In this document: positions 1 through 23,358 of the stretch, piece by piece
Layout: each line of letters begins with the position of its first letter
How positions within the stretch are numbered: position 1 is the first letter of the stretch
Position numbers and translations under genes: made by a program
Notes under the pieces: model-generated
Told to the model about the DNA's origin: nothing
What the model saw: the letters and a program-made list of their open reading frames with translations, nothing else
Database searches by the model: none
Assembly (NCBI GenBank): GCA_037447605.1
Contig: CM074809.1
Location: 1,292,689 to 1,356,688, forward strand
Direction of reading: 5' to 3'
Length of the DNA: 64,000 bases
DNA from: Zygnema circumcarinatum SAG 698-1b
Lineage: Eukaryota > Plantae > Zygnematophyceae

Positions 1-470
1 CCGTCCGCCGTCCGTCCGTCGTTCGCTACCTCCAATGGCGACCGGTCCGTCCCCCCGTCCTTCCGTACGGATGACCGTACAAGGTTCGTACCGTTTCCGT
101 ACGACGTCCGTTTCTTGGACGGAGCGAAGGTTCGGAGGGGCCCATGCACCGCTTTGCACGCTCCATCTCTCCCACTCCCTCTCCCTCTCCCTCTCCCTCT
201 CTCTCTCTCTCTCCCGCTCTCTTCTTCGAGCCTCCGCTGCCCTTGAGAGCGATGGATTTTCTCGAATAAGACATTGAATCGCGGTAAAATCTAAAGGGAT
301 TTAGTGATCAATGATTCCTGCAGGATTCGAGTTGTGTGGGAGAGGGACGGGGTTGTAGAGTGGGAGAGAAGGAGAGAGAAAGAGAGTGGGGATGAAGGTG
401 TATGAGAGTAAGCTGGATCCAGAAAGGTGGTACGGATTTTTTCTGAGGAGAAGGATATGAATCGAAGTGG

Positions 471-3400
471 ATGGAAGGCGGGGACGTTGCCATGGATGAA
501 GGAGAGGGCTCGAAGCATGTGAAGTTTGAGAGGGAGGAGGGGGCGGGCGTTGCGGAGGATGCGCTGCCGAGGACTCTTTCAGGGGATTTGGAAGCCGAGA
601 ATTTTCAGCAGATGTTCTGGATGGAGGAAGGAGGCCGAAATGCTACGGCGGGAGCTGAAATTCGAGGAGTTTCATACTCATGCAAGGAGTGCAGGCTGGA
701 GATGCAACGTTTGCAGAACGAGTTGCACGAAGGCCGGCTCACACAAGTATCGAATCTAAATCTTCTATTTGATTCCTTTCAAATATTTCGTTTTTTTTTT
801 CTGAAACCGGGAAGGGCATGGAAACCAAACAGGTGCCATGCTGTTTTGGTAATTGGAGAGAGCAGATTTAAGCTGGAAAAATAATTTAATTGTCGACCGT
901 GTTCCATGTTCTGAAACGTGAATTTCCTTATCGTTTTTTTTTTCAACATAATCACATTCGATGTAGGTGCTTGTTTGCGCACATGAAATAGTCTTGTCAG
1001 GTTTGGATTGATCACATCCTTAGAAGTTATATGCATGACAAAGAGGAGCGGAAACGTTACAGGTTTTCTTGCTAAACTTTGAGCGGCCTTTAGTCGGTAA
1101 CTTCGAACTGAATCCATGGCTTTGAGAGTTCCATGTGAGGCTTTACCCGAACGTGTCAACAAGATTTTTCGTGTGACTTTGGCAAGTGTCTTCAACCCAC
1201 GCAATGATTTCATTGGCGCTTTCAGCTATTTGGATTCATGTCGTTTTCTGCTTTCTTAATGTTCGAGCGCACCCTTTTTTTTTTCAGGCTGCCCTTGAAT
1301 CGGAGCTGCGGTGGGCAATGGAGGGAAAGTTGAATGCCGAAGCTGCTCTTGCACAGCACCTCGTTGGATATCGAGTATGCAGTTCTAAAACTTGGAAGGA
1401 ACGCTGATGCTGGAGGCTGCACTGGTATCTGTATGGCGTTCAGTTTTGATGTTCTTGAAACTCCAAATAATTTGGTATTTGCTTTGCGCAATTGAAAAAT
1501 TTCTTACGTCAGTCGTCTTTAACACCAATTGGTATTTTTAATCCGCCAAGTCGATTGAACGAGACTGAACTCTGTATTTTTACCTTTTTTTTTTTTTTGT
1601 CTATTCTCTACATTTCCCTGTTCACGGCTCACTCGTCATATTTTTTTGTTCTACGTGCGCCTATAGGATGAGCCTTTGAGGCCCCAAACTCCACGCCAAC
1701 AGCAAACTTTTTGGGATGGTAATACTTCTTCGGAACTGCGATCAGTTGGGCATGCTTCCGCCAAACCACATTTGCATGCACTCAGGTCAGTTCCTCCTTC
1801 CTTCGTCCATTTCAGAGTTCTTTTTTGTATGCCTTTCTTTGCCTATCCCCGATTGTTTCCATATTGAATGGCAGTGCGCGCTTGAAAGGTGCCTTACATC
1901 TTATCATTTCTTTCCCTTAAATCAGTGTCGGAGGTTCGCCAGCATCCCGCTTGTTTCCAAGTACGACGGAGAGGTTGTTTGCAAATTCTTCCGATGCGAT
2001 ATACAACGATGTACAGGCAATCGCGCAGCAGAAAGTGAAGGAGCTTGAGAGTAAGCTGGGGCGCCTATCCAGCGAGTTTCAAGGTTTGGCTGAGAGCTAT
2101 AATGCAATGGTGATACGGTTTCAACGATCACAAGAGGATGTCTATCAGGTAAAGAGCTTGTTTCTCTTGCAACTGCCGAAATCATCAGCTAGTTCATAAA
2201 GAATGTAGAAAATTCCACGCAGTCGCAACTTGCAGCGTTACGTTATCCATTTTAAGTTAAAACCGTCACGATCATTGGCAAACAACAGACTAAAACCCGA
2301 AAAATAGTGACGAAAGTAGTTGCACACTTCTTGCCTTTGTGCAGCTTCACAAAGAAAATTTGGATTTGCAAACTGCCAATAACGAGCTGGTAAAAGCCTG
2401 CAAGCTGAGGGACAGACGCGTTCGCAAGCTTATGGAGCGCTGTGGCCTTGCAACCGAACAAAGCCCTCCGCCCACTGCTCCCTCCCACCTGCACCCACGG
2501 CCCCTTCTCTCACCTCCTGTGAGATCGGCGCCCTGCTTGCTCACCCCCGCCATTGAAATCCCCAAGCAAGAGCTCAAGAAGAAAGCAGACACTGCTTCTG
2601 AGGAGCAGAAACAAACAAGAGAAGGGTTCAACTTGCATTCTTGCACTACAAAGGCGCAAGCACAAGTGCTTTCCCCTGTGATGGATCAACTGGCAGTGGG
2701 AACCACCATCTTGACTACTGAAAAGAGGCATACTGCTGCTCAAGGTGTAGGAGTTATCGGTCAGAAAGCTTCTGCTGTGAGAGAACCACCACAAGCGGCG
2801 AAGGTGGGAGAAGTGAAGCCGGAGTCTTCTGCGCATCTAAGTGGGCCGCTTGCTAAGCGGCTCGGCCTCCCCCTGGGAAATTCAGTTAAGGGCACCACTT
2901 GTGTGGTGGATGAAACCGCAAGTACTGCCATAGTTTGTGAAGGCACCGCGCTAATGCCCGTGTCGCCTGTGAAGGTTCCCGCCCTTCCAAAGAGCATCTC
3001 TGTGAGGGCGAGTGCGCAAGCTGCCGTGACCAACCGCAAGAGGACTATATCGCCGGACGGTCTTAAAGGGGCCGGAAAGCCGCAGCAGCCGCCAAGCCAC
3101 GTCGAAAGGCCCAGTCGGCAGCGTACTTCGGCCGCCGGTGAAGAGGTGAGGAGAGGGGGGAGGGGGGGGGGCAGGGGCGGTGGGTCCCTCTTGGAAAGAA
3201 AGCTAATAATTTAGAATTGTGGGGGTTGAATTGTTGTCTGCGTGCAGCTGTTGGATGGGTTTGATCAAGGAGATCAGGAGTTCTACGAGGCTCAATTGGA
3301 TGTGTACACACAGGGAACGTACAAAACCGAGCTTTGCAACAAGTGGGAGGAACTTGGCAGATGTCCCTATGCTGAACGTTGCCAGGTATGCAGGTCTTAT

Positions 3401-3962
3401 ACACATTGTGGGAGAGATATGGAGAATGAAACATCTTATCCCGTCTTGTAACTTATTGTCATCTGTTCAAAACTTGGTTTCTGACTTTTCGCAATGTCGA
3501 TTAGGTAAAGGTTACGTAGGTTTTTATGCCATACGGAACACGTCTAAGCGTGATATTCAAAGTTCTCTGAAAACACGTCTCGCACATGCACTAACATCTC
3601 CCTTTCTATTGCCCTTCTCGTATTAGTACACTTCCAATTCACGTTCCTGTAAGTCAAGCATACAAACATATTGCTCGAAAAAGTGGAGAACCCTTCTGTC
3701 CTATGACGAGAGGCCACTCTCTAGCCTTTCATACCATGCTGGATTTATTTTTATGAGCTATCTGGAAGCAGACTTACTATTCGAAGGGTGAGGGGCCAAA
3801 CAGTTTGCCCACGGCGTAGAGGAGCTACGGCCTATCTTGCGCCATCCGCGATACAAGACAGAGCTCTGCAGGATGGTCGCCGCGGGAGAGACGTGCCCAT
3901 ATGGCCACCGCTGCCATTTCCGCCACGCGCTCTCACCGGAAGAAGCGGCTGCACTCGTGTAG
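471..3962 (+). CDS. Tandem CCCH zinc-finger protein (TTP/TIS11-type, AtC3H14/AtC3H15-like) with long N-terminal coiled-coil and low-complexity region; 7 exons, ~600 aa
   Basis: Exons join in frame across GT-AG introns (e.g. CAA|gtatcg..ttttcag|GCT; GAG|gtgagg..gtgcag|CTG; CAG|gtatgc..cag|TTT). The C-terminus reads [25 protein letters not shown]|[41 protein letters not shown], i.e. two C-x8-C-x5-C-x3-H fingers, each with a YKTEL lead-in. Stop TAG at 3960-3962. Confidence 0.9.
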
Positions 3963-4662
3963 GACACACCCCCTCCCCTCTTTTTGAAATTCTGTTTAGA
4001 TCAGATAATAATAGACTGGCCAAAGGCCGCCTTGAGAGGCCTAAGTCTAGAAACACGCTACGGCCTCTAGCGTGCGCTAATGCAAGATTGCGTGACCTAA
4101 AAGACAATCTCTGTCTTCTTACATCCGTGTCCAGTGCCACCTATGTTTAGAGGGGCTACGAGGCTACCCGCAGACTCTTAGGTAGCTATTGTAAACTCCA
4201 CTGTTAGCGTTAGCAGTGTTGAAACTATTTAGGAATTGAAACTTTTTGGTGGCTTTCTGACGAAAGTAGAGTAGTACATAGGCTTGTCTACAAGCCTGGC
4301 TGACTGAAGCTTTATATCTATGGCGAGACATTGGAGAAGTATCTATGCAACCATGTGATGGCCACCAAAGCGGAAAGAAATGCGAGTTGACAGGTGCCAG
4401 GAACTCATTTGAAGGCAACTTATTTGTGGATGCTTGAGAATTGTCATCATCGTCATTGCGGAGATTGAGAAGTAGCGAATGATGTAAAATTACATTCATC
4501 GACCACATGCTTGTCAGTAGATTAGTCTCTTGTCAAGTTTTACATACAACACTTAAGACTGCCTTAGTCTTAACCACAAGCTTCTTAACAACTATACATC
4601 GCTCACCAGACGAGTTGATGAACTCGATCCAAAAGCTACTCAAGAAGAATCGTCCAAACCTA

Positions 4663-6406
4663 TTAACTCGAGGGTGTATCCGCACGCAGCATGTGCCCGC
4701 TCGTGTTCCGCGCGTGCTTGGCAAGGTAGGGCATAAAGTCGGTCCCTCCAGTCCCTCGCTCGTCTTCTTTTGGGCTGTGTTTCTTAATGTAAGCATACGC
4801 AAAGTTCTTGTGCAAAGAGCGAAACTTGAAAAGTTCTTCCAGGCAGCAGTCGTAATCAGCAGCTAACTCACTCACATGTGAAAGTACGAAGGCCCTTATA
4901 GAGGGTCCACCTTCTATTGATTTCAGAAACAACCGATGTTCTTTAGGCATGTGATCACGCATGACCTGCACAGAAATGAAATCAATCAGATGTGTTTGAG
5001 TCCTGTGGTGTAAGGTCCCCAAAAAAGGAAACATGATTTCCTGGCACAGATTAGTAAGAGTAACTCGTACCTTGAGATAGTCAGACAACCATTCGGAGGG
5101 ATGTGAGACTCCCAAAGCCGCATCTAATGAAGGGATAATTGTCGACTGTGCCCCAGTCTCTCCATACAGTTTTTGAGGTTCGTCATGTACTCCGCGATAG
5201 AGGAGGCCAGATGGCAGTGCTGGATTATCACGCCAGCCAGACATAAAGATACGGATACGATGGTAATAGATATATGGATCGCACTTTTCTCCCATGCGAT
5301 TTAATGTCTGCTGCATGGCTTGAAGCACTTTCATGATAGACCTTAAACTGATGGCCACCTGATGCATCAGACCGATGAAAAAGAAAACTAGGTCATGGAT
5401 GACATTTCTAATCCATAACTTTGCATGTAGCCCTTAAAGCAGAATCGATTCACAAGAAATACGTTACTGTCTTTCAGCACCTTGCCTTGAGAGAATGCAG
5501 GACGCCGTGTTTCACTCTTTACACTTCCGTTCTTGTTCAATTGTCTTGATGAACCAGAGATGCAGCACTCACTCGATTCCCTTCCAGTACGGACTTTGAA
5601 ATTGGGACATAGTTGAGCCCCACCTTCCCCAAAACGCCCATTCTCACCTGTTCTGTGTTATCGTTTGTTACTGCCTTTTGGGCCATCAAAATAGCCTCCA
5701 TGGCTGTAGAAGCCTTTGCCTCAATATCCACATGTACAAGACGGAACCATTCCTCATCCACTCCTCCAAAAAAGTTGTGAAGACACACAATGTTACCAAG
5801 CTCTACCGGACCTTCCGGATCCAACCGTCGCCAATTCAAAAGGTTGTATGTGGCATAGACCAAAACGGGGGGCATATCCAGACTCGCTGCAATCTTGTGC
5901 CACGGAACAGCAATGCGGCTCGGCAACTCCGTGGAAGCAGGCTCTTCACCCCAAACATAGGCATGTGCAATGAACGAAAGGAGAAAGTGTGCTCGCCATA
6001 TCTCCCTTTCATCCTTCCCCTCCAGTAAACCCTGTGCATCAAACTCCGGCAATCTCTCTAGGCGAATCCTGAGTTTCCCATTTCCTGCAGCCACTAACAA
6101 CTGTGGTAGCTCTAGCAGAGTATCCTCCCAGACAGAATACTTTGAGCTGGACAGCCGCCTTAACGGATCTTCTGCAGGCAGAAAACCACGCTTGGCTGTT
6201 ACTGCAAAACAGTCTGAGGACGCTTTTGTTTCAACAGCCATGAGTGGATACCCTCGTTCTGGAGTAAGAAAAATGCGAGCTCGGGCTGGTAAGGTAACAG
6301 CGATTGTAGACACAGTGGAACTGCGAGCGCTTGCTTTTCTTGGTGCTGGTGAGCTAAGGGTGTTATACAACGTGGATGGGTTCCGCGCACTATGCAATGC
6401 TTGCAT
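4663..6406 (-). CDS. IDO: Indoleamine 2,3-dioxygenase family heme enzyme, 3 exons (6406-5648, 5358-5071, 4965-4663), ~449 aa, with presequence-like N-terminus
   Basis: IDO motifs: RGFLP, AHAYVWG, MPPVLVYA..L.NW, FFGGVDEEWFRLVHVDIE, RIRIFMSGW, GETGAQS, MRDHMP.EHR.FL, FRSLH (proximal His), GTGGTDFMPYL. Both introns are phase-0 GT-AG. Confidence 0.93.
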
Positions 6407-7296
6407 CTCTCAAAGTAAATGGCTCAGGAAGCCTCCTGGGTACCTACTGAAGTCCAGCCTCACACTAGCAGCAAGCAACAGCTTACGAGCTGCATGAAGT
6501 TCATTCCTCATTTAGGAACGTTACTTGGACCCTCGTCTAGCCTCAGACCACATACCTGCAGAAGCAACACGAAGAAAGTCTCAACGTCACTGGATCAAGA
6601 AAAAAGAAAAGGACTGAAGCCTCTCTTTGCTTTTGTAAGAACTCACAAGCAATGCTCTCCAATAAAATTCCAATGCGGAGGATAATTCATATGTTAGCCA
6701 TTTCCACTAACGAAATTCCACAAGAAAAGCCAGAGGGATGCACTGATATCAGTGCAAGTGTGTGATCAGGGGTCTACTCCAGCCATTACTGCTCCACGCA
6801 CTCCAAAACACTTCCTGCAAGCAGAGCGCAGACGATTACAGCTCATGCAGAAACCATTGGTGAGATCAACCACTCACTTCCAGGAACATTGCTCCTCTTT
6901 ACCGACTCCACTCCTTCCCCAACAGGCTGCTTCGGCAATCTGTCCTTCATAACGGGTGACACATGTACAGATGCCACAGCAGCGAGGAGGCCTACTATCA
7001 TCGTGGTTACAACGATTTTCCCTCCCACGCCTCCCTTTGCTGCGCTCGTAGAAGGCGGCCTTGCAGCCATGGCTGAGGAAGAACCAAGCTTTCCTGCAAG
7101 CAGAGGCGAAGGGAAAACGACAGACGACCCTTAGCCCTAACGCAAACCGTCCTAGCCGACGACCGAAACTGTTACTATTTATGCTCAAAAGTACGAAACT
7201 AGGATGTACGATCAACCGATTCAGTTACATCCATGTATCCGTACGAAAGCTGCTCTTGTCCAACTGGGAACTTTCTTTGGTTGCAAACTTTCAGCC

Positions 7297-10200
7297 ATGG
7301 CTGCCTCTCTTGCAGGTCTGCCTGTGCTTCCAGCTCCTCCTCTTGCGGCGGAATGTCATTCCATTTCTGGTCGTCTCCCTATCCGCCTCCCTCCCCTCTC
7401 TATTCCGGAGCTTCCTGATGAGCCTTCTCGCGTTTCCAGCAGATTAAGGAGTGACCATCATGGCCTTGAAGGGCGCATACCGAACCTGAAACGCTGTTAT
7501 AATGTTGACTTTTCTGCTTCAATTGCATCTTCAAGAGTCAATCGTATTGTCTCTGCATTTAGAATTGTGCCCCTATCTTCACATGTCCCACAAGGCCGCC
7601 TAGGACGACGAGCTTCTGACAGCTCGGCAGGAGGTTTCTTTAGAGCAAGCAATAGGGACGCAAGCGTTCTCTTAGGACGCGCTGCAGGCAGGGTCGAAGG
7701 AACTTTGTGGGAAATGCTTGGCTCAGGGGAGAGAAGGCAGCCCTTAGGAACTCTGCAAACAGAGCCAAGCGGGAGTAACTTGAGAAATTTTCGAGTGCGA
7801 TCGTCGTTCAGGGAGGACGATGGTGAGACTAGCTGCGCGCATTGTATCAGCTGAAGACCTGCTGTAATCGTTAATTTTGGGATTGACTAATTTTGCACTT
7901 ATTCCACGTCCTTTACATCGAATAAATTTTTAGTTTGTGCAAAGAATGTTTTGAGATTAGGATACACAATTTGCCTGTACGAGTCTCTGAAGTGAAACAT
8001 TGGGCTCATCTTGCAACAGAGTTGAGAGAAGCAGAAGATCCCATGCTACAAGCTGTAGAGGAGGCAGCAAAGCTGCACCCTTCATCATCTGGCACGGGCC
8101 TCTCCAGCCTGGACAGTCTGGGAATATTTTCAAACCTGAACGAGGCTACATTGCAGCACGAACCAGGTTTGCTCGGTGCTATTCCTCTAAGCGGAGTAAT
8201 TGAGATGTTCGTTAGGGGGTGATGAGAGTTGCTGAATGGCAGCAGACAGTCTACCATTCTCAACCATTTGAATCGAGACTGCAAGGGTTTCCCAGTGACT
8301 TGTCTGCGAAGCCTGCTTTGACCTTTTGCCCGTCATTGGTTCAAATGTTTCAACTTGAGGTCTTCTAATAACTGACGGATAACATTCGTCTACTGCTGTG
8401 CATAATGGTTACGCAGGAACTCTGGCAAGTGCTGTCCTTCTGGTGGCCGGAACCACGGTGTGCACCTTCTGCATTCCCATGAACTGCCTTGGAATGTCTG
8501 CACATCTGGCGAATGTCTGAAAAGTATTAATGGCATCGAGAAATTTGGGCGGGCAAGGATTGGATAAAAACATGAACGTCTCCAGGGTTAATTAAAGAAA
8601 ATGGATTTGTCTGGATGGAGCAGCCAGTTCATCAGAAAATGGAATTCTGTAATCGTGCATGGAGACAGGCAAGCAGTCCTCAGCGAGACAAAGTTGTCAC
8701 AGCAGCAGGCAGTCTTGAGTGATAGAGGGTGTGGGAACGACAGAGAGCATCTTGGTGGGAGAAAACGGGCCTGTTATTTTCGTTTACTGGTAATAATTAT
8801 TTGTCTGTTCACAGATGTCACTTTTATTGAAAACACTAGGCTTTCGTGAAGAGTGGAATTTGGACTCTGTGGAGAAGAGAAAGAGAGAATTTTCCAAATG
8901 AGAGGCTCGAAGTGTTTGGACGCAAAACAGAGTGTGGAATGCGGATGCCAACTGTTTCTGCAGGGCTGATGGCTTGCTGCAAGATAGGTTGGCGCGGGCA
9001 TCCTGGCTATCCCAGCAGTAACGCAAGAAGCTGGCTTCTTAGCGTCGGCTCCAACATGCATCCTCTGCTGGCTCTATATGGTGGGTGATCTTGGCTGTTG
9101 CTACACAGATTGACTTCACTATCATGTATCATAGGAGTCCGGTTGCAACAGCCTTGGAAATGTGGAACATGATTCGAGAAATGGGCCGAGCTTAACTTGA
9201 GAGGCGATGCTGCTGTGCCGTCCACAAGGACTAGGCTGTTATGACAATTCGGCACATTCAGTTTGAGAAAGGGTGATGTTTGTGCTTGGTCTAATGCCAA
9301 ATTCTGGAATTCAAACAGGTCACAACAGGGTTGCTGGTGGCGGAGGTGAATATCAACACTATGTGTGAGCTGGGCTCTGGAGGTGTTTCTTTGGTGAGCT
9401 TTCCCGCTCTTTCAACTGATCAGTTAGTGACGCTGTATTCGGATTTCCTCTACAAATCTTATTTTGAATGGAGCGACCCAGCCACTGACCTCGTAAAGCG
9501 TTGGCCCGGGCAGAGTCCAGTGTGGCAAGAGATATTTTAGCACTTCATCCGAAATCTCTCAATTTCGTTTTTCTTGTTAAACACAGTTGCAGAGGTAGCA
9601 TAATCACCACCGGTTCATCGTTTTCGCAGGAGTGTGTTCCAGGGATTATAAATACCTTATTATTCTGACCGTCATGCATCATGTGTGCCGGCAGCAAGAT
9701 GATAGAGTCTCTGACTACCTTTGCCTTTTAATCTTTTACCAGGTATCTATGGCAGATCGGACATTGGGAACGGTGGGAGTGATCGTTTCCTGTGCGGCAT
9801 ACGCCTTCATTCATTACGCCCTTCTTGTGGCATATGTTTCTCGGTCTTCTGACATCATTGCTCAAGCTTCAGGGATGCCTGTATGGCTTGCCGCAGTCCT
9901 CTTCAGTGCTAGTCTCGGCGGTCTCTGTTACTTCTCCAGGTGCGTGAAATGAAGGGTTTCTCTTCGAAGCAGTAGAGACCCAATCAAGAAGATGCCTATA
10001 TGCACATGATTATGGAAAGCTTTCTAATAACGTTGTCTGAAAAGCTGATCGATGTGTGGTGGAGTCAGGGGTCCTGGGGTTACAGCCAACGAGTGATAGG
10101 AGCTGTAAACGGTGGACTTGTGGTTGGGGTTGTTGGGAGTTTCACTCTGCTTTTGGTGCTCGCTGCTGGAAACACCGATCCTTCTCTTCTTCTGCAAGCG

Positions 10201-11503
10201 GACTTCTCGGCCGTGCCAAAGAGTGTGCCGATAATCGCACTTTCTTTTGTCTATCAGGTGAGGTGTGCGCTTCCCTTTTCCCCGTTGCTCGCTTTTACAA
10301 AGTCCTCGTAGGAACGATGTCTGCAACCTCTGAAGGCAGCTGTTCTGACATTTTGCCGAAGTAATGTTCTGATTCAGTCTAAGGGACGGGAGATGCTGCA
10401 GAATGTCGTCCCCGTTATTTCTACTCAACTTGAAGGCAATCTTCCGCGTATTCGCTGGGCAGTGATCCTGGGAACTGCAATCCCGCTTGTGATGTTCCTT
10501 GCATGGGATGCCGTCATTTTGGGATCCCCCATTGCTGCCTCAACAGGTGCATCGGATGTTGCTGCTTCTGTGGTCGACATGGACCCCCTTATGCGTCTAC
10601 GTGAGGCCAGTGGAGCTGTTGGGGTAAGGCCTAACATTTGCTTGAAGGTGTAGAGGAGAGAGAGTTCCGTTGCAGGAGCGGCTTTCTCCATTCAGGATGG
10701 ACATAGTGGAAAACAACATGGCATCTGTCATTTTTCCTAACGACCCGCTTTGCAAATTGGAGAATCTTACTGGTCACTCAGTACGCTGAAGGTTTCATCT
10801 GTTGTTTTGTTTGCAGCCCCTTGTGGAGATATTTTCGTTCTTTGCGGTGGCGACTTCATACATCGGCTTCGTGTTGGGCCTCTCCGATTTTCTTGCAGAT
10901 TGTGAGTAGACTGTTTAACTCCGTTTAGGTCGAAGGACCTGAAAGTATGGCTTTGCCATATGGAGGAGTGTTCTCCCAGCCATAAAGCAAGTATTGCATG
11001 GACGCATTATCATTACAGCAGGGTGATGGGAGCAGGGCTGAAACTTCCTTCAGGAAGAGGGCAGCACCCTGTGCCATACATTCTCACTCTACTTCCGCCC
11101 CTTGTGCTCGCCCTCCTTGCTCCCAACGTCTTCTTCTCAGCCCTTGATGTAGCCGGAACTTACGGAGGTAGCCACACAACTCTATGGTACCTTTGTGATT
11201 TCAGTGGGTGAGAGGGCATGGGCTTGATGCTCGTGTTTTTGTTGTAAGATGGAGAAATGATTGTTTAATTCTTTATGCTCCATTTTGGGGATCACTATAG
11301 TGGAGCATGTTTTTGCTTTTGCAGTGTTGGTGCTGTTCGGTATCGTTCCAGCAGCCATGGCGTGGTCCGAACGGTACTCTTCCGGGGGTCTCCCTCCGGC
11401 GGTGAAGCCCATTGTGCCGGGAGGGCGCCTGACATTGGGAGCAGTCATTGGGGGGGCAGTTTTGATCATCGGAGGAGAGCTCTGGTCAGACCTTGTCACG
11501 TGA
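7297..11503 (+). CDS. Tryptophan/tyrosine permease family (Mtr/TnaB/TyrP-like, plant type) with long N-terminal presequence
   Basis: Spliced segments: FSNLNEATLQHEP|GTLASAVLLVAGTT|VGAGILAIPAVTQEAGF..CWLYM|VTTGLLVAEVNINTMCELGSGGVSL|VSMADRTLG..HYALLVAYV..|..VPIIALSFVYQ|NVVPVISTQLEG..IPLVMFLAWDAVILG|PLVEIFSFFAVATSYIGFVLGLSDFLAD|..PPLVLALLAPNVFFSALDVAGTYG|VLVLFGIVPAAMAWSERY. The start codon and first junction are less certain. Confidence 0.9.
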
Positions 11504-12387
11504 ACGGCATATGAGCGATAAATTTAACCAGGAATAAGCTCCGGAGGTTTCAAACACTTTGTAATGTAAATGTGTTTTCTACTAAATCTCTCTCTCCCTC
11601 CTTTCGCCCTGTGACTCCCTCCCTCTGCGTCCCTTCATTGAAATAAGAAGTGCTAGCATGAGTGGCAACCTTCAACGTGAATCCCAAATCTGGAATTCTG
11701 TAAGGCAAGCGACTTACATACGAATGAAGCAGGAAAAGAGGCAGGAGTAAAAGGGTGGGATCCAAAGCACAGCGATGTTGGAGTAAGTTCAGTTCAGAAC
11801 CGTCCTGTCCCTCCTCTCCTGCTCCCCCTCCCATGCCTCTCTCCCAACAGTCTACACTCTGAAACTCCTTTGTGTCCTAAAGTGAAGCAGACCAAAGAGA
11901 AAGTGAGAAAGGGACTGGCATTGGCGCCCCCTTGTGCCTGTTAGAACGAGTGGAAAGGACGTGGCAGAAACGGTCCGCGTAGGCAACACTGGCAAGCCTT
12001 TTTACAGACACTCAGTTTTTCCAAATTTCGACTCATTTCTGCCCAAAGCAAAGACCAAAAGGTTGCAGGCCACAAACCGCAACACTCGAAATGCCGACAT
12101 GAAACTCATCAAGTTTTTGATGACGTCAGTTTCCCTCATGATTGTGACACATGTCCTTTTATAATGACGTCATCCGGTTTATCAAACTGAAAGATCGTGA
12201 AGTCATAGTTTGTCATTTCTGGTTTTCTGATATTTTTTCGCAGTTTTGAAGTCACACTCACATTTGACCCAGGTCCAGCGGTTCGGTTACTTGTATGACG
12301 TCATTCTCTTGCATAGCTTACGCCATACTCCCTCCCTCTCTGGCCCTCGGAAGTGGAGAAGACTGCCTCGTCCTCTTGGAAGGCGCC

Positions 12388-14115
12388 ATGGCTGCCACTG
12401 CTGTGCTCGTGCCGCCTCCTTCCTTTCTTTTTACGCACTCACCCTCCATAGCCTGCGTCCCGGTCTGCAAAAGGCTTCAGAGAAGAGTTAGGGTTTCCAC
12501 ACGTCTTTGCCGGAGTCCCCAGGCAACCGCAGAGATTGGAGGGGTGGTGGCTGAGATTGGAGGAAAGTCTGAAATCACATGGCAGGTGCTTGTTGGAAGC
12601 ATTGGTACGTTTTTTGGCTGATCCTGATGCACATAAATTCTTCAAATGCTGAGGGATGTGCCACTTGTCCACAGTATATTCATGAAGCAGTAAGAGATTG
12701 TAAATTGGTTGCTGCAAGCAGTCATGCCCACAACTGTTGATCGATGGCTTAATTTTTCCATTTCAAATTTGACAAATATTTCTCAACAATTACGTTCCTC
12801 GCTGCTCCTCTTTTACCACTATGATTCTCAAGGAAGTTCATTTTTTTCATATTAAGGCTCAAGAGCATCTGCAAGACAGGAAAGAGCTGCAGGAACTTCC
12901 ATTTGCTTTCTGTTAGCAGCGCATCACCAGCTCGGTGCTGCGTCAGCATTGCTTCTGATTGCTCAGTGCAGCGCAGTTCTCTTGCAGTTGTGAAAATTTG
13001 CCTAGAAGGTTTGGCAGAATCAGGAAAGGTTCATTTCGTGTCTCTGCCCTAAAAAGGAACCGCTGAAAAACGCAGCTTTCGCTGCTTACACCGCTTTCTT
13101 TGAAAACCTTTGCATTCGGTACTGTTTGTTAAGGAGCGACCATGAGATGACGACCACGATCCACTGACCTCCAAGTACAATTGTGCGCTAATGACTTTAA
13201 ATGTGACAGCCGGCGTCACTCCGTTTGTGGTAGCTGGCATTGAGTTCAGTAAACGCATTGTGAGTATACCACATGCCACATCCTCTCCCCATTGTGAGTA
13301 TAGTAACATGACACACGTTCCACAAAAGAAACAGTGAGCTGAAGTTACATTAAACAACTTGGTGCAACAGCAAGATGCATATTTGCCACGGACGTGTGTG
13401 CATTGGTTTGCACGAAACTTGGAGAAATTAGTCTTCATTTGATGTCCTATGTTAAGAGGCATGTCGAGGCAGTAACGCGAATGGGCGATGATGCGCCATG
13501 GCTGTGTAGATTGAACAACGGAATTGTGAGGTCTGTGGAGGTTCTGGGCTTCAGTTGGTAGGCCGCTTTTATCGGAAGTGCTCAGGATGCGGTGGGTCCT
13601 CATTGCTTTTACTATTGAATATTCTTCATGCTATCTTCTTTCCAGGACCTTCAACTCGGTGGTCCTCAGTGGTTCTCATGTCTGTTGATTGTCCTTGCAG
13701 TACAATTCTCGCTCTCTGAATAATGTCTCACCCTCACGTTAGCAGCAGAAGTTTGCGCAGGATAAACAAATCAGATCCCATGTCTGCCTGATGCATACAA
13801 AGTGCCTCACAATGACTCGAGTGAAAGCGGCTGATGTGTTGACATTGCAGGTCAAGAATGTCCAGTGATGGTTGCAATGGTAGCAACTGTAATGGAAGCT
13901 AAACAATTAGTTGGCTGTGTTCCCTTTCTTCAGCAGCAGTATTCCAACTTGATTTTGCCTTAATTCTTGATAAAGAAGTTTTACACTAGGAGTCTTTTGT
14001 ATCAGCCATAAGTGCGTGATGCGCCTGAGCTTACCGATGTGGCTGTTCTTTCGCTGCGGGGGTTGCAGGAGGCTTTCTACCTTGGCAGTCGTGGAAACGG
14101 TTCTTCTCTGGATGA
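12388..14115 (+). CDS. Small plastid-type DnaJ-like zinc-finger membrane protein (CxxCxGxG; DnaJE1-type), 4 exons
   Basis: MAATAVLVPPPSFL..(transit-like)..SEITWQVLVGSI|AGVTPFVVAGIEFSKRI|IEQRNCEVCGGSGLQLVGRFYRKCSGC|GGFLPWQSWKRFFSG*. Canonical GT-AG junctions at ~12604/13210, ~13261/13510 and ~13591/14069. Confidence 0.85.
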
Positions 14116-14652
14116 CACAATGTGGGGACACTACAGAGATTTTTTAAGCTCGTCTTGCAATATTTTGCTACTTTACCGTGGACTATTGTTCATTGAGAGC
14201 GTTCCTTTGCACATATTTTCAGATACCATCAAAAAAATAAAAAAATGACCATTATGAATATCAATATCAACTTTCATACTGTAGACAATGACATTTGAGT
14301 GTAGATCCACCCTTGATGGCGGATCAGCGCATGATGTGTGTCCAATTGTTCATGTGAATATACTCAATCGTTATTATGCGATAAGTTCACCATGTAAATG
14401 CCTCCCCACAATACTTTGCTGGAGCGTGCACCCTATCGCTGAAAAACACATGCCATGTCCCATACTCATGCCATGCCATACTCATGCCATGCCATACTCA
14501 GACATGCACATATCCCATGCTGAGAGCAGACCACAAGCTCCACCTTACAGAGACGCAATGCAATTTCCATTAAGCGGCCTTTCTTATGAACACGATTATA
14601 AAAATTATACACCGCTGCCGTTCCTAAACATGTACAAAGGGGAGCGCTCTCT

Positions 14653-15737
14653 CTATCCGAAGTAGCCGTCGCCCCTGCCCTTGAAGCCGACCTGGCCGAG
14701 GAGGAGGGCAATGAAGAGGCCGGTGTGCCACAAGATCATCCACAGCCTGCACCCAATAACAGCTCGCAATGAATATCTATAAATAAATTCTTATACGAAT
14801 GAAAAAAATTGGCCTGCATTGTACCTCACGCAGCTCATAAGACCTAGATACCCCGAGCGCATCATCTACTCACACTGCCACCCTCAGCACTACCAGTCAC
14901 GGACCTGATGAGCTACATGAGGGCATCACGTTACGAGAGCGAGTTTGAGACGACATGTGAAAGACTTGGATGACGATGAAGACGACGCTCACCAGAAGGG
15001 AGAGTCGAGGGAAGGGCCCACAGGGAACTTCGCGAGCTCAGGGCCGATGCTGCCGAAGAAGAGGCCGGTCAGGCTCTCGCCATTGATGGCGGGGATGCTT
15101 GAAGGTGCGAGCCATCCGATGAGACCGAAGCCGACGACGGAGAGGTCCTTCCTCAGCCAGTTAGGGCTAAAGCTGCAGGTTCACACCCCTTCATCTTCTC
15201 TCAGTAACTGTCCGCCTTTTCATAAACAGCAAACCAAAAATCCTACGAGTAGCGAAGGAAGTGAATGAAGTGAAGGAAAGATAGGTGCATTCAGGGCACA
15301 AACCAGGTCACGCGGGCAGCACCGGCGGTGCGCTCAAGCTGCACTCCGGAGAAGCGAGCGCCGCTGCCGGACACGAAGGCTGCACAGCACCTCGAGCAGT
15401 CTCTTAGAAGGCACACTAATATGCTAGAGCACTTCCATTACCATTATAAGCCGACCTACTCTCTGGACAAGTAAACGAGAGAGGCATCCTACAAGGCCGG
15501 GGGTAGGAAACGCAGCGCACAAGTATCTTACTATCTTCCAACCCTAAAACAACCTATTCAAAGTCCCCGTTTCCCACCGTCCTCTCAAACACACAAACGC
15601 TTTGCAGTCCCTCCCAGACAGAAGGCCCTTCCGGAAGCAATACCAGACTTGAGCTGAACGTTGGAGCGCACGCTCAAGGAGGATCCGGCCAAGCCAGTCA
15701 CAGGCACGGCCACGGAGCAGGCAGCTGCGCACGCCAT
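14653..15737 (-). CDS. psaO: Photosystem I subunit O, 4 exons
   Basis: Transit peptide followed by CFSPNWLRKDLSVVGFGLIGWLAPSSIPAINGESLTGLFFGSIGPELAKFPVGPSLDSPFW|LWMILWHTGLFIALLLGQVGFKGRGDGYFG*, which is the typical PsaO sequence. Confidence 0.95.
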
Positions 15738-15972
15738 GGCTGCAGAGCGCGAGAGTGTGCTAGTGCGAAAGCGTGAGAGAGAGTGCGTGACCAGACTCCC
15801 TCTTCCTCCCCTCTCCCTGAGTGTATGCCTCCGCGGGGGGACGCCATCGCGGAGCGGATCGCGCGGGCAGGCGCCGATTGGCGTTGCGGCGCGCGGGCGG
15901 ATAAGGACGCTAACGGCACCGCCCAAAGGGCCAGGAGGTGCGCGCAGCCGGGGAGGGGGGTACGAATAGGGA

Positions 15973-16088
15973 GCCACGTGGACGATTGTCAGCATGTGTG
16001 GATCACCGCAGTCTGCCACGTGGACTATCGCGGGCTGCCATGTGGACTATTGAGGGCTGCCACGTGGACGATTGCGGGCTGCCACGTA
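15973..16088. promoter_or_regulatory. G-box (GCCACGTG) array upstream of psaO; four units at 22-bp period plus one more copy
   Basis: Unit starts at 15973, 16015, 16037 (GCCATGTG variant), 16059 and 16081 (GCCACGTA variant). Unit consensus GCCACGTGGACKATTGCGGGCT. Confidence 0.75.
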
Positions 16089-17183
16089 TCTGACCTACTA
16101 CACCTATGGAGAGGGTAGGAGGCTAGGGAGTAGGGACGCCATGGCTTAAGGTTAGGAGTGGTGGTAGGTGCACTATGTGGGGTAGGAGTGAGGCCCTAGA
16201 CTCAAGGTGATGGGGGGGTGTGGGGCTAGGAGGAGTGGGTTTTGTTAAACATGGATGCATGGCGCGAGAGAGGGGTGTAGACATTGGAGCAGTTCCACTT
16301 GCTTGCAGGTGGTCGGTCAGTGATGGCGAGGCGGCGCGAGGAGGCAATGATCTCAATGATCATGGTGGTTCATGATCATTCGTGGTTTGCGATCGCATGC
16401 ATGCAGTCGAGAGAGTGCCGCATGGGGGTGTTGAAGTCATTGGGATACATTCGGAAAACGAAGGCTCAAGTGAGGAAAATGGCATTGATCTCACGATGGC
16501 GAGGCCTTCAAATGTACATGGACAAAAGCACTTAAGCTCGTCCTATTGTTGCGGTGGTGGTGGTGTGATGGTTCACAACATCACATCAGAAGAGAATAGG
16601 CAACTGAATTCGTTGGATGAAGCTGGAACTCAGCGGCGCAGTTGAAACACAGTTTAAAGCGGAGGGCGCAGCTGCCCATCAGACAGACTTCAAGCGTCTC
16701 TTAGACCAGCAGAACACATGGAGACATGCCCTCCTGCTCGGCAAAGCTTACATGTACAAGAGGCGCAGTTTCTCATAGCCGTTATTGAGCACCGTCTACA
16801 AAAACGCTGAGAATATTGAACAGACTCAACAGCGCTAAACAGCGCGTACGGAGGGCCTACCCTTACTCCCAACCTGCCCTGCAATCTGCAAAAACCTAAG
16901 GAAAAAGGTCTGTTTTCGTCGCTTCCAAAATACATCTGCGAATATACAAGGGCCTAGCTACATTGAAAGCGGATAATGAAGAGATAGAAAAAAAAAACGA
17001 GAGCATACAGCGCATTTTGGACTGTGCTCTGTCGGCTGAGCTTCAGAGGCATGTAAGCAGCCATAAACCCTTTCCTTGGCTTCCGTATTGCCGGCTTGCA
17101 GCTTACATGCAGGGTCTGCTCCTTTCTTTCTTACTGAACAAGGGGGTGGTGGCTGTACAAGGAAGGGACCTTCCCCTACGCCT

Positions 17184-23358
<6,175 letters not shown>

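Follow-up and report, generated by a model that had tools for sequence, protein, structure and literature searches.

A head-to-head IDO-family and Trp/Tyr permease-family gene pair in a streptophyte alga, with a conserved upstream open reading frame in the IDO mRNA

Introduction

In Escherichia coli, the tnaCAB operon sets a tryptophan (Trp)-degrading enzyme, the pyridoxal phosphate (PLP) tryptophanase TnaA, beside TnaB, a Trp permease of the HAAAP/Trp_Tyr_perm family, with the short TnaC leader peptide encoded ahead of the enzyme. Here we describe a locus with a comparable set of parts in a 64,000-nucleotide stretch of contig CM074809.1 (positions 1,292,689 to 1,356,688, assembly GCA_037447605.1) of Zygnema circumcarinatum SAG 698-1b, referred to throughout as the window and numbered from its first letter. 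A gene of the IDO family (minus strand) and a gene of the Trp/tyrosine (Tyr) permease family (plus strand) lie head to head within it, both of them expressed, and a small open reading frame (ORF) precedes the IDO coding sequence on its mRNA. A sequence-only reading of the window had proposed that the pair forms a unit for Trp transport and catabolism, possibly in the plastid, and had itself named linkage confined to this genome as an outcome that would count against the proposal.

IDO sequences fall into three branches, and efficient oxidation of Trp has been shown for just one of them, the other two being poor at it (PMC4217691). Green plants make nicotinamide adenine dinucleotide from aspartate and are reported to be without the kynurenine pathway (PMC4217691), with Prasinoderma, which has the complete pathway, as an exception (PMC7455551). 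According to a review that cites Okazaki 2010, a rice IDO transgene lowered melatonin in tomato (PMC6150314), and indoleamines other than Trp are therefore plausible IDO substrates. The plant TyrP/Mtr-like permease, of probable chlamydial origin, is a candidate plastid Trp/Tyr transporter that has never been studied (Cenci et al. 2016, PMC4916741), and plastid proteomes have not yielded its family (PMC4916741). Chlorophytes are known to have bicistronic mRNAs whose first ORF is small and which are translated by leaky scanning (PMC11291117). Our literature search found no paper on IDO in streptophyte algae, on Cre17.g710200, on At2g33260, on a Tyr permease placed in the chloroplast envelope or on any IDO-permease pairing.

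Results

The divergent arrangement of the IDO and permease genes, first read from the letters alone, was confirmed by Pfam matches and by spliced transcripts. Seven public runs were found to hold 54-65% of the sampled words of positions 5300-11299, and transcript contigs were compared for four runs out of three studies. Contigs from all four runs were identical to the window and skipped GT..AG introns, and we therefore regard them as RNA-derived. Transcripts of both genes were present in each of the four runs, with contig word depths of 116, 98, 73 and 67 for the IDO gene and 85, 103, 68 and 83 for the permease gene, depths of a kind that cannot rank expression. The intron-rich structure of the genes and the nearest relatives of both proteins indicate that the host DNA is nuclear and that of a streptophyte alga.

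The IDO and permease start codons (ATG 6406 and ATG 7297) lie 890 bp apart, as had been reported earlier. Because the IDO mRNA has a spliced leader, however, the transcript 5' ends, at 7089 on the minus strand for the IDO gene and at 7271 on the plus strand for the permease gene, are separated by about 180 bp and not by 890. The contig 5' ends place divergent transcription within a common promoter region well inside 1 kb, and the shared bidirectional promoter that the sequence-only reading had proposed gains support from them. Adjacency of two Trp-related families is not by itself beyond chance, since genes often have a divergent neighbour and this pair is one selected out of some 1000 windows. 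No Pfam family was matched by the flanking ORFs of at least 65 amino acids (aa) in 1-4660 and 11550-16650, and none of the larger ORFs on either side of the pair in the window gave a Pfam match to a domain of the Trp or kynurenine pathway.

The leader of the IDO mRNA is made up of a 5' exon (7089-6878) and a second part that runs from 6555 to the ATG at 6406. Its first ATG, at 7070 and 19 nucleotides (nt) from the 5' end, opens a small ORF of 75 codons that encodes one hydrophobic 19-mer (IVVTTMIVGLLAAVASVHV). The small ORF and the IDO ORF share a mature transcript, as two contigs join 7088/9-6876 to 6553-5645. The same arrangement was observed in the species of the Logan sequence P0001, the closest match to the IDO, in which all six transcript contigs (L006-L011; L006:104-328) carry both ORFs and the small ORF, 74 codons long there, stops 137 nt ahead of the IDO ATG. 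Identity between the two peptides is 48%, with one indel of a single codon and the same stop position, and both have the motif GGVGGK, a hydrophobic stretch of 19 residues (mean Kyte-Doolittle 2.3) and the ending VPGS-x-WSE. Conservation continues straight over the splice junction of the window, and mismatches at codon positions 1, 2 and 3 number 29, 21 and 46 (chi-square p 0.006); the spacer between the small ORF and the IDO ATG showed no nucleotide similarity between the two species. The pattern resembles that of a translated ORF under purifying selection, as judged from these two species. For the small ORF, Pfam gave no match, word searches found no homologue and the Atlas contained no meaningful look-alike. 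Neither the spliced leader nor the conserved upstream ORF had been part of the sequence-only reading.

The start context of the small ORF is GCCATGG. In the mature mRNA the IDO start comes after nine ATGs, of which four are in the small-ORF frame; in the P0001 species it comes after four. The rule described for chlorophytes, with a weak ORF 1 context and depletion of ATGs before ORF 2 (PMC11291117), is not followed. With these bicistronic mRNAs (PMC11291117), and with the conserved-peptide upstream ORFs (uORFs) of plants, the alga shares the layout of a single capped mRNA in which the leader is short, the first ORF small and conserved, and the second ORF larger and some 100 nt further downstream. 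Compared to the chlorophyte bicistrons, the ORF 1 start context looks strong, nine ATGs lie before ORF 2, ORF 1 is split by an intron, the host is a streptophyte and the arrangement is known here from transcripts and sequence conservation. Because of the strong-looking start context and the nine ATGs, a repressive conserved-peptide uORF appears at least as likely as a bicistron. A low-depth contig (6531-6887) was unspliced over the leader intron, and one run showed a plus-strand-type GT..AG joint (6634-6770) inside this intron; these may be antisense or intron-retained RNA.

A palindrome, CAGCCATGGCTG, was observed at exactly two places in the 64 kb, ATG 7070 and ATG 7297. Allowing one mismatch gave three matches against 0.28 expected, and no shuffle reached three. 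Taken together, the copies form a perfect inverted repeat of 14 nt whose arms lie 214 nt apart, and the first ORFs on the two sides therefore begin in mirror-image contexts that flank the shared promoter region.

Profile PF01231 matched two minus strand ORFs, 5537-6406 (E 9e-47, profile 4-190) and 4663-5367 (E 9e-44, profile 188-408), with scores of 160 and 150 bits against a cut-off of 26; jointly these cover profile positions 4-408 of 412 and place the product in the IDO family. The protein has 449 aa, encoded in three coding exons separated by two coding introns. Its start is fixed at 6406 by in-frame stops just upstream, one of them two codons away. We infer the intron 5070-4966 from its GT..AG ends and from the absence of its 35 codons in P0001 and in human IDO1/2. 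The last coding exon carries the proximal heme histidine (FRSLHKNF), whose H aligns with the H of LRSYHITM in IDO2, and the GTGG loop, which reads ERGTGGTDF in the exon translation; the H and GTG columns are nearly invariant in the alignment. The motif R-I-x-x-SGW is kept as well, and the protein thus shares with human IDO1/IDO2 and bacterial IDOs (PF01231) the full-length domain, the proximal histidine, R-I-x-x-SGW and GTGG. It differs from the human proteins in its organelle-type presequence and in a histidine where IDO2 has a threonine. This residue, H225 (window 5733-5731) in the motif EEWFxLVH, is invariant in 27 of 27 aligned green and bacterial homologues, and the IDO2 threonine with which the invariant histidine of the green and bacterial clade aligns presumably corresponds to Ser167 of IDO1. 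A distal-pocket histidine would make this clade more like TDO than IDO1.

The IDO protein has an N-terminal extension of 72 residues before the RGFLP motif, where most green IDOs have 37-103 and the median of 86 other, mostly bacterial, homologues is 19, with only two of these exceeding 40. The extension is rich in serine, threonine, alanine and arginine (28% Ser/Thr, 16% Ala and 12% Arg/Lys in the first 50 residues), with a single acidic residue in the first 50, at position 50. A second methionine, at codon 56, is kept in P0001. The first 55-70 residues or so appear presequence-like, with a composition that suits an organelle presequence and does not specify the organelle.

The closest matches to the IDO were two Logan sequences, P0001 (72% identity) and that of the P0002 species (60%). 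Further matches included Ginkgo Gb_14362, Chlamydomonas reinhardtii, C. eustigma, Monoraphidium, Sanguina and volvocines, along with many bacterial homologues at about 45-57% identity and about 200 bits; the first coding exon matched human IDO2 with 86 bits, far below these bacterial homologues. A search from the Ginkgo IDO added Cryptomeria and Wollemia, with no angiosperm, fern or bryophyte among the matches listed, and green algae and gymnosperms were the only sources in which this IDO clade turned up. All 13 green sequences fell into a single group of a 91-row tree (SH-aLRT 100), one part of it streptophyte-plus-Ginkgo and the other chlorophyte, a division that fits inheritance within green plants followed by many losses. 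The alga's IDO belongs to an uncharacterised green plus bacterial clade. Bacterial relatives are often from intracellular lineages (Coxiellaceae, Legionellaceae, Chlamydiales; L026, L038, L050, L060, L079, L081, L085), which group together in the tree, and the green clade is not nested among them.

For the permease, searched exon by exon, PF03222 (Trp_Tyr_perm) matched five plus strand ORFs between 9632 and 11503 collinearly with the profile (positions 69-118, 137-201, 199-241, 317-345 and 345-390), which places the gene in this family, and the NCBIfam aromatic amino acid transporter model TIGR00837 also matched the exons collinearly (11-41, 63-110, 195-236, 271-297 and 312-339). Exon-wise matches to the TyrP, Mtr and TnaB equivalogs were alike, weak and all far below cut-offs. 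The protein has 622 aa in 11 exons, with all introns GT-AG and the frame open. Transcript contigs start at 7271-7359, and ATG 7297 is therefore taken as the first ATG. Run X1 showed a minor, frame-shifting alternative acceptor at 10069, 17 nt upstream of exon 7, where the other three runs used 10086. Low-depth contigs keep intron 3 (8430-9016), and run X7 contains an extra GT..AG joint from 8788 to 9015; these look like minor permease isoforms.

Exons 1-2 of the permease encode 224 aa ahead of the conserved core and were observed on the same transcript contigs as exon 3. The protein begins MAAS, its first 40 residues are rich in proline, leucine and alanine with an acidic residue already at position 19, and the extension turns Ser/Arg-rich in the middle and acidic at its end. 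The sequence-only reading had described Ser/Ala/Arg-rich extensions on both proteins; both are indeed extended beyond their bacterial relatives and the IDO has such a composition, whereas the Pro/Leu/Ala-rich start and acidic end of the permease do not fit the description. The best matches to exon 6, from a search of all cluster representatives, were 62-69% identical and came from the ferns Pteridium and Psilotum, the angiosperms Stephania, Diospyros, Cucurbita, Populus and Bienertia, and two Closterium proteins; those relatives that are named are called "tyrosine-specific transport protein". With nearest relatives in ferns, angiosperms and Closterium, the gene is best regarded as the algal orthologue of the TyrP/Mtr-like land-plant permease, a family found throughout land plants. 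The Archaeplastida TyrP/Mtr-like permeases (PMC4916741) are of the same Pfam family and also have an N-terminal extension ahead of the core. The 224 residues of the alga are the longest extension seen in this comparison, relatives in Cucurbita, Pteridium, Psilotum and Closterium having 110-170.

The pair was absent from every genome or contig examined. No PF03222 gene was found within 10 kb of the IDO gene in C. eustigma, Monoraphidium or Sanguina. The IDO neighbours are a DEAD/HA2 helicase and a TMEM128-family gene in C. eustigma, in which the permease (g760) and IDO (g954) lie on different contigs, and an FtsX-domain gene in Sanguina. No permease was found at a metagenomic bacterial IDO locus, nor at 80 bacterial IDO loci searched with flanks of 8 kb on either side (tblastn with E. 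coli TnaB and the alga's exons), and the 80 loci had no conserved neighbour whatever. Some bacterial "neighbours" that seemed conserved were rejected as shadow ORFs overlapping IDO itself. Annotation and tblastn placed no IDO beside the permease in Closterium NIES-68 and Yama58-4, in which an exportin-4-like gene and a 1933-aa gene lie upstream of the permease, and none was found beside the permease on three further algal contigs. A genomic contig of the P0002 species (L005), with only 568 bp upstream of IDO, had no trace of the permease or the small ORF. The P0001 contigs are transcripts and carry no synteny, and the likeliest sharers of the pair, the P0001 and P0002 species and the IDO-bearing gymnosperms, fall outside the linkage comparison. 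On this basis the pairing appears lineage-specific and a joint function hypothetical.

The features of the locus are collected in Table 1. Two further gene arrangements were observed in other algae. In Monoraphidium the IDO gene (10001) lies head to head with a flavin amine-oxidase-family gene (L002:5742-9947, minus strand), 54 bp apart in the gene models, and on a picoalga-like metagenomic contig the permease lies tail to tail with a PF01494 flavin monooxygenase, PF01494 being a family that includes kynurenine 3-monooxygenase. Elsewhere in the window an unrelated neighbour gene, represented by the minus strand ORF 19562-20284, matches phosphatidylserine synthase (PF03034, E 1e-11).

Table 1. 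Features of the IDO-permease locus, in window coordinates.
Feature	Positions	Strand	Evidence
IDO last coding exon, 100 codons and stop 4665-4663	4663..4965	-	Pfam, human IDO2 alignment; acceptor AG 4967-4966
IDO coding intron 2, 105 nt, in frame, stop-free	4966..5070	-	Predicted only; outside the read-covered stretch
IDO middle coding exon, 96 codons	5071..5358	-	Pfam, alignment, translation
IDO coding intron 1, 289 nt, GT..AG	5359..5647	-	Joint in contigs of all four runs
IDO first coding part, 253 codons from ATG 6406	5648..6406	-	Pfam, alignment
Spacer from small ORF to IDO ATG, 114 nt, with out-of-frame ATGs	6407..6520	-	Sequence
Small ORF end: last bases of codon 65, MWSEARRGSK, stop 6523-6521	6521..6555	-	Contigs, conservation
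IDO leader intron, 322 nt, GT..AG, splits the small ORF	6556..6877	-	Joint 6553/6876 (cut +2), four of four runs
Small upstream ORF, codons 1-64 and first base of codon 65, ATG 7070	6878..7070	-	Kept in L006-L011
12-nt palindrome CAGCCATGGCTG around the small-ORF start codon	7064..7075	.	Sequence
IDO 19-nt leader, furthest contig 5' end	7071..7089	-	Contigs; run X3 adapter follows at 7088
Shared divergent promoter region, about 181 bp	7090..7270	.	Between contig 5' ends 7089 and 7271; depth 0-12 in bin 7100-7299
Palindrome CAGCCATGGCTG around the permease start codon	7292..7303	.	Sequence
Permease exon 1: 26-nt leader, ATG 7297, 175 codons of non-conserved N-terminal extension	7271..7822	+	Contigs, frame
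Permease exon 2: 49 codons, acidic end of the extension	8020..8166	+	Contigs, frame
Permease exon 3: conserved core starts (GTLASAVLLVAGTT)	8417..8457	+	Contigs, frame
Permease exon 4	8988..9080	+	Contigs, frame, TIGR00837
Permease exon 5	9319..9393	+	Contigs, frame
Permease exon 6	9743..9939	+	Pfam, contigs, frame, homology search, TIGR00837
Permease exon 7	10086..10257	+	Contigs, frame
Permease exon 8	10402..10623	+	Pfam, contigs, frame, TIGR00837
Permease exon 9	10817..10901	+	Contigs, frame, TIGR00837
Permease exon 10	11036..11167	+	Contigs, frame, TIGR00837
Permease exon 11, coding part to stop 11501-11503	11325..11503	+	Loose contig ends at 11167 (four of four runs) match 11325 onward; acceptor AG and frame

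Discussion

We consider it probable that the locus holds two separate expressed nuclear genes, transcribed in opposite directions from one promoter region of about 180 bp, whose adjacency is lineage-specific and of which the IDO gene is under upstream-ORF control. Each gene would then most likely do the ordinary job of its own family. The permease would probably sit in an organelle (plastid) envelope and move Tyr and/or Trp, a location and substrates that we infer from its family. The IDO gene encodes a haem dioxygenase of its family that most likely cleaves the indole ring in Trp or a related indoleamine, and its presequence-like N-terminus together with the conserved second methionine would allow both organellar and cytosolic forms. 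The conserved 75-codon ORF upstream on the same mRNA probably gates IDO translation; it may be a conserved-peptide uORF, or the mRNA may be bicistronic with this ORF as its first cistron. Adjacency of the two genes may give correlated transcription and is not evidence of an obligate Trp import-and-oxidation unit.

Several points weigh against this explanation. It is suggestive that permease and enzyme, each of a Trp family, share a promoter of 181 bp, and the pair may be conserved among close relatives (the P0001 and P0002 species and the gymnosperms with IDO). The organelle placements of both proteins are guesses. The small upstream ORF is known from two species only, and the nine leader ATGs do not fit the ATG-poor pattern of chlorophyte bicistrons.

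The unit proposed by the sequence-only reading, in which the permease moves Trp over an organelle envelope or out of the plastid and a co-regulated IDO oxidises it to N-formylkynurenine, setting Trp availability, seems unlikely to us. The close 5' ends and the presence of both transcripts in all four runs are consistent with it, as are the N-terminal extensions on both proteins, the handling of Trp by characterised members of both families and the proposal of the plant permease as a plastid Trp transporter (PMC4916741), and the presence of one and the same palindrome around the first start codon of both sides suggests a mirror-image layout of regulation. However, the linkage is missing from three chlorophytes, two Closterium genomes, three algal contigs and the 80 bacterial loci, which is the outcome that the proposal had set against itself. 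The permease is moreover universal in land plants, which apart from gymnosperms lack this IDO, and no further Trp-pathway domain lies among the flanking ORFs. The kynurenine pathway is reportedly missing from green plants, and the conversion of Trp to N-formylkynurenine, which had been taken as given for the enzyme, holds for one of the three IDO branches (PMC4217691), whereas the alga's own clade is uncharacterised. The IDO substrate might instead be melatonin or another organelle-made indoleamine, giving products of the N1-acetyl-N2-formyl-5-methoxykynuramine (AFMK) type, with the permease an irrelevant neighbour; the gap in the green-plant pathway (PMC4217691, PMC7455551) speaks for this. 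IDO enzymes take many indoles, the review noted above (PMC6150314, citing Okazaki 2010) reports lowered tomato melatonin with the rice transgene, and the presequence-like N-terminus is kept across green IDOs. Yet the rice gene may be unrelated, because no angiosperm is among the clade relatives listed, and the clade is known by its sequences; we regard this explanation, too, as doubtful.

A minus strand transcript that chiefly makes the 75-aa membrane peptide, with IDO as a poorly or conditionally translated second cistron and the small protein as the true divergent partner of the permease, would agree with the position and context of ATG 7070 (first in the mRNA, 19 nt from the 5' end, GCCATGG), with the eight further ATGs ahead of the IDO start and with the coding signature of the conserved peptide, and in chlorophytes the first cistron often encodes a small membrane protein, TOM22 and OST4 being examples (PMC11291117). 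We hold it improbable: the IDO ORF is intact and 72% identical to P0001, and so must be translated, while the small ORF has no homologue beyond one species and so short a leader makes leaky scanning beyond the first ATG more likely. Least credible in our view is a mirrored unit in which the promoter of about 180 bp, flanked by identical palindromic start elements, drives the permease gene in one direction and a bicistronic mRNA in the other, with the small peptide gating an organelle-targeted IDO by Trp or indole as a eukaryotic analogue of tnaC-tnaA-tnaB. The likeness to E. coli tnaCAB lies in a Trp-degrading enzyme that adjoins a HAAAP/Trp_Tyr_perm permease and in a short peptide ORF upstream of the enzyme ORF. 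In contrast, the E. coli genes share one strand and one mRNA whereas those of the alga are divergent with separate mRNAs, and the alga's enzyme is a haem dioxygenase and not a PLP tryptophanase. TnaC is 24 codons long, whereas the alga's upstream ORF has 75 and encodes a hydrophobic segment, any Trp-sensing role for it being hypothetical, and a permease lies near IDO at none of the 80 bacterial loci.

Returning to the explanation that we favour, two separate genes with upstream-ORF control of IDO, the adjacency is for now a lineage-specific placement of members of two known gene families. A functional pairing would open a way into two green-plant proteins that have gone unstudied: the permease, and the IDO of algae and gymnosperms, an orphan enzyme for which no downstream pathway is known. 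More concrete is what the conserved upstream ORF of the IDO mRNA offers, an inexpensive test case of uORF or bicistronic control in a streptophyte alga, bicistronic messages of this type having so far been described in chlorophytes.

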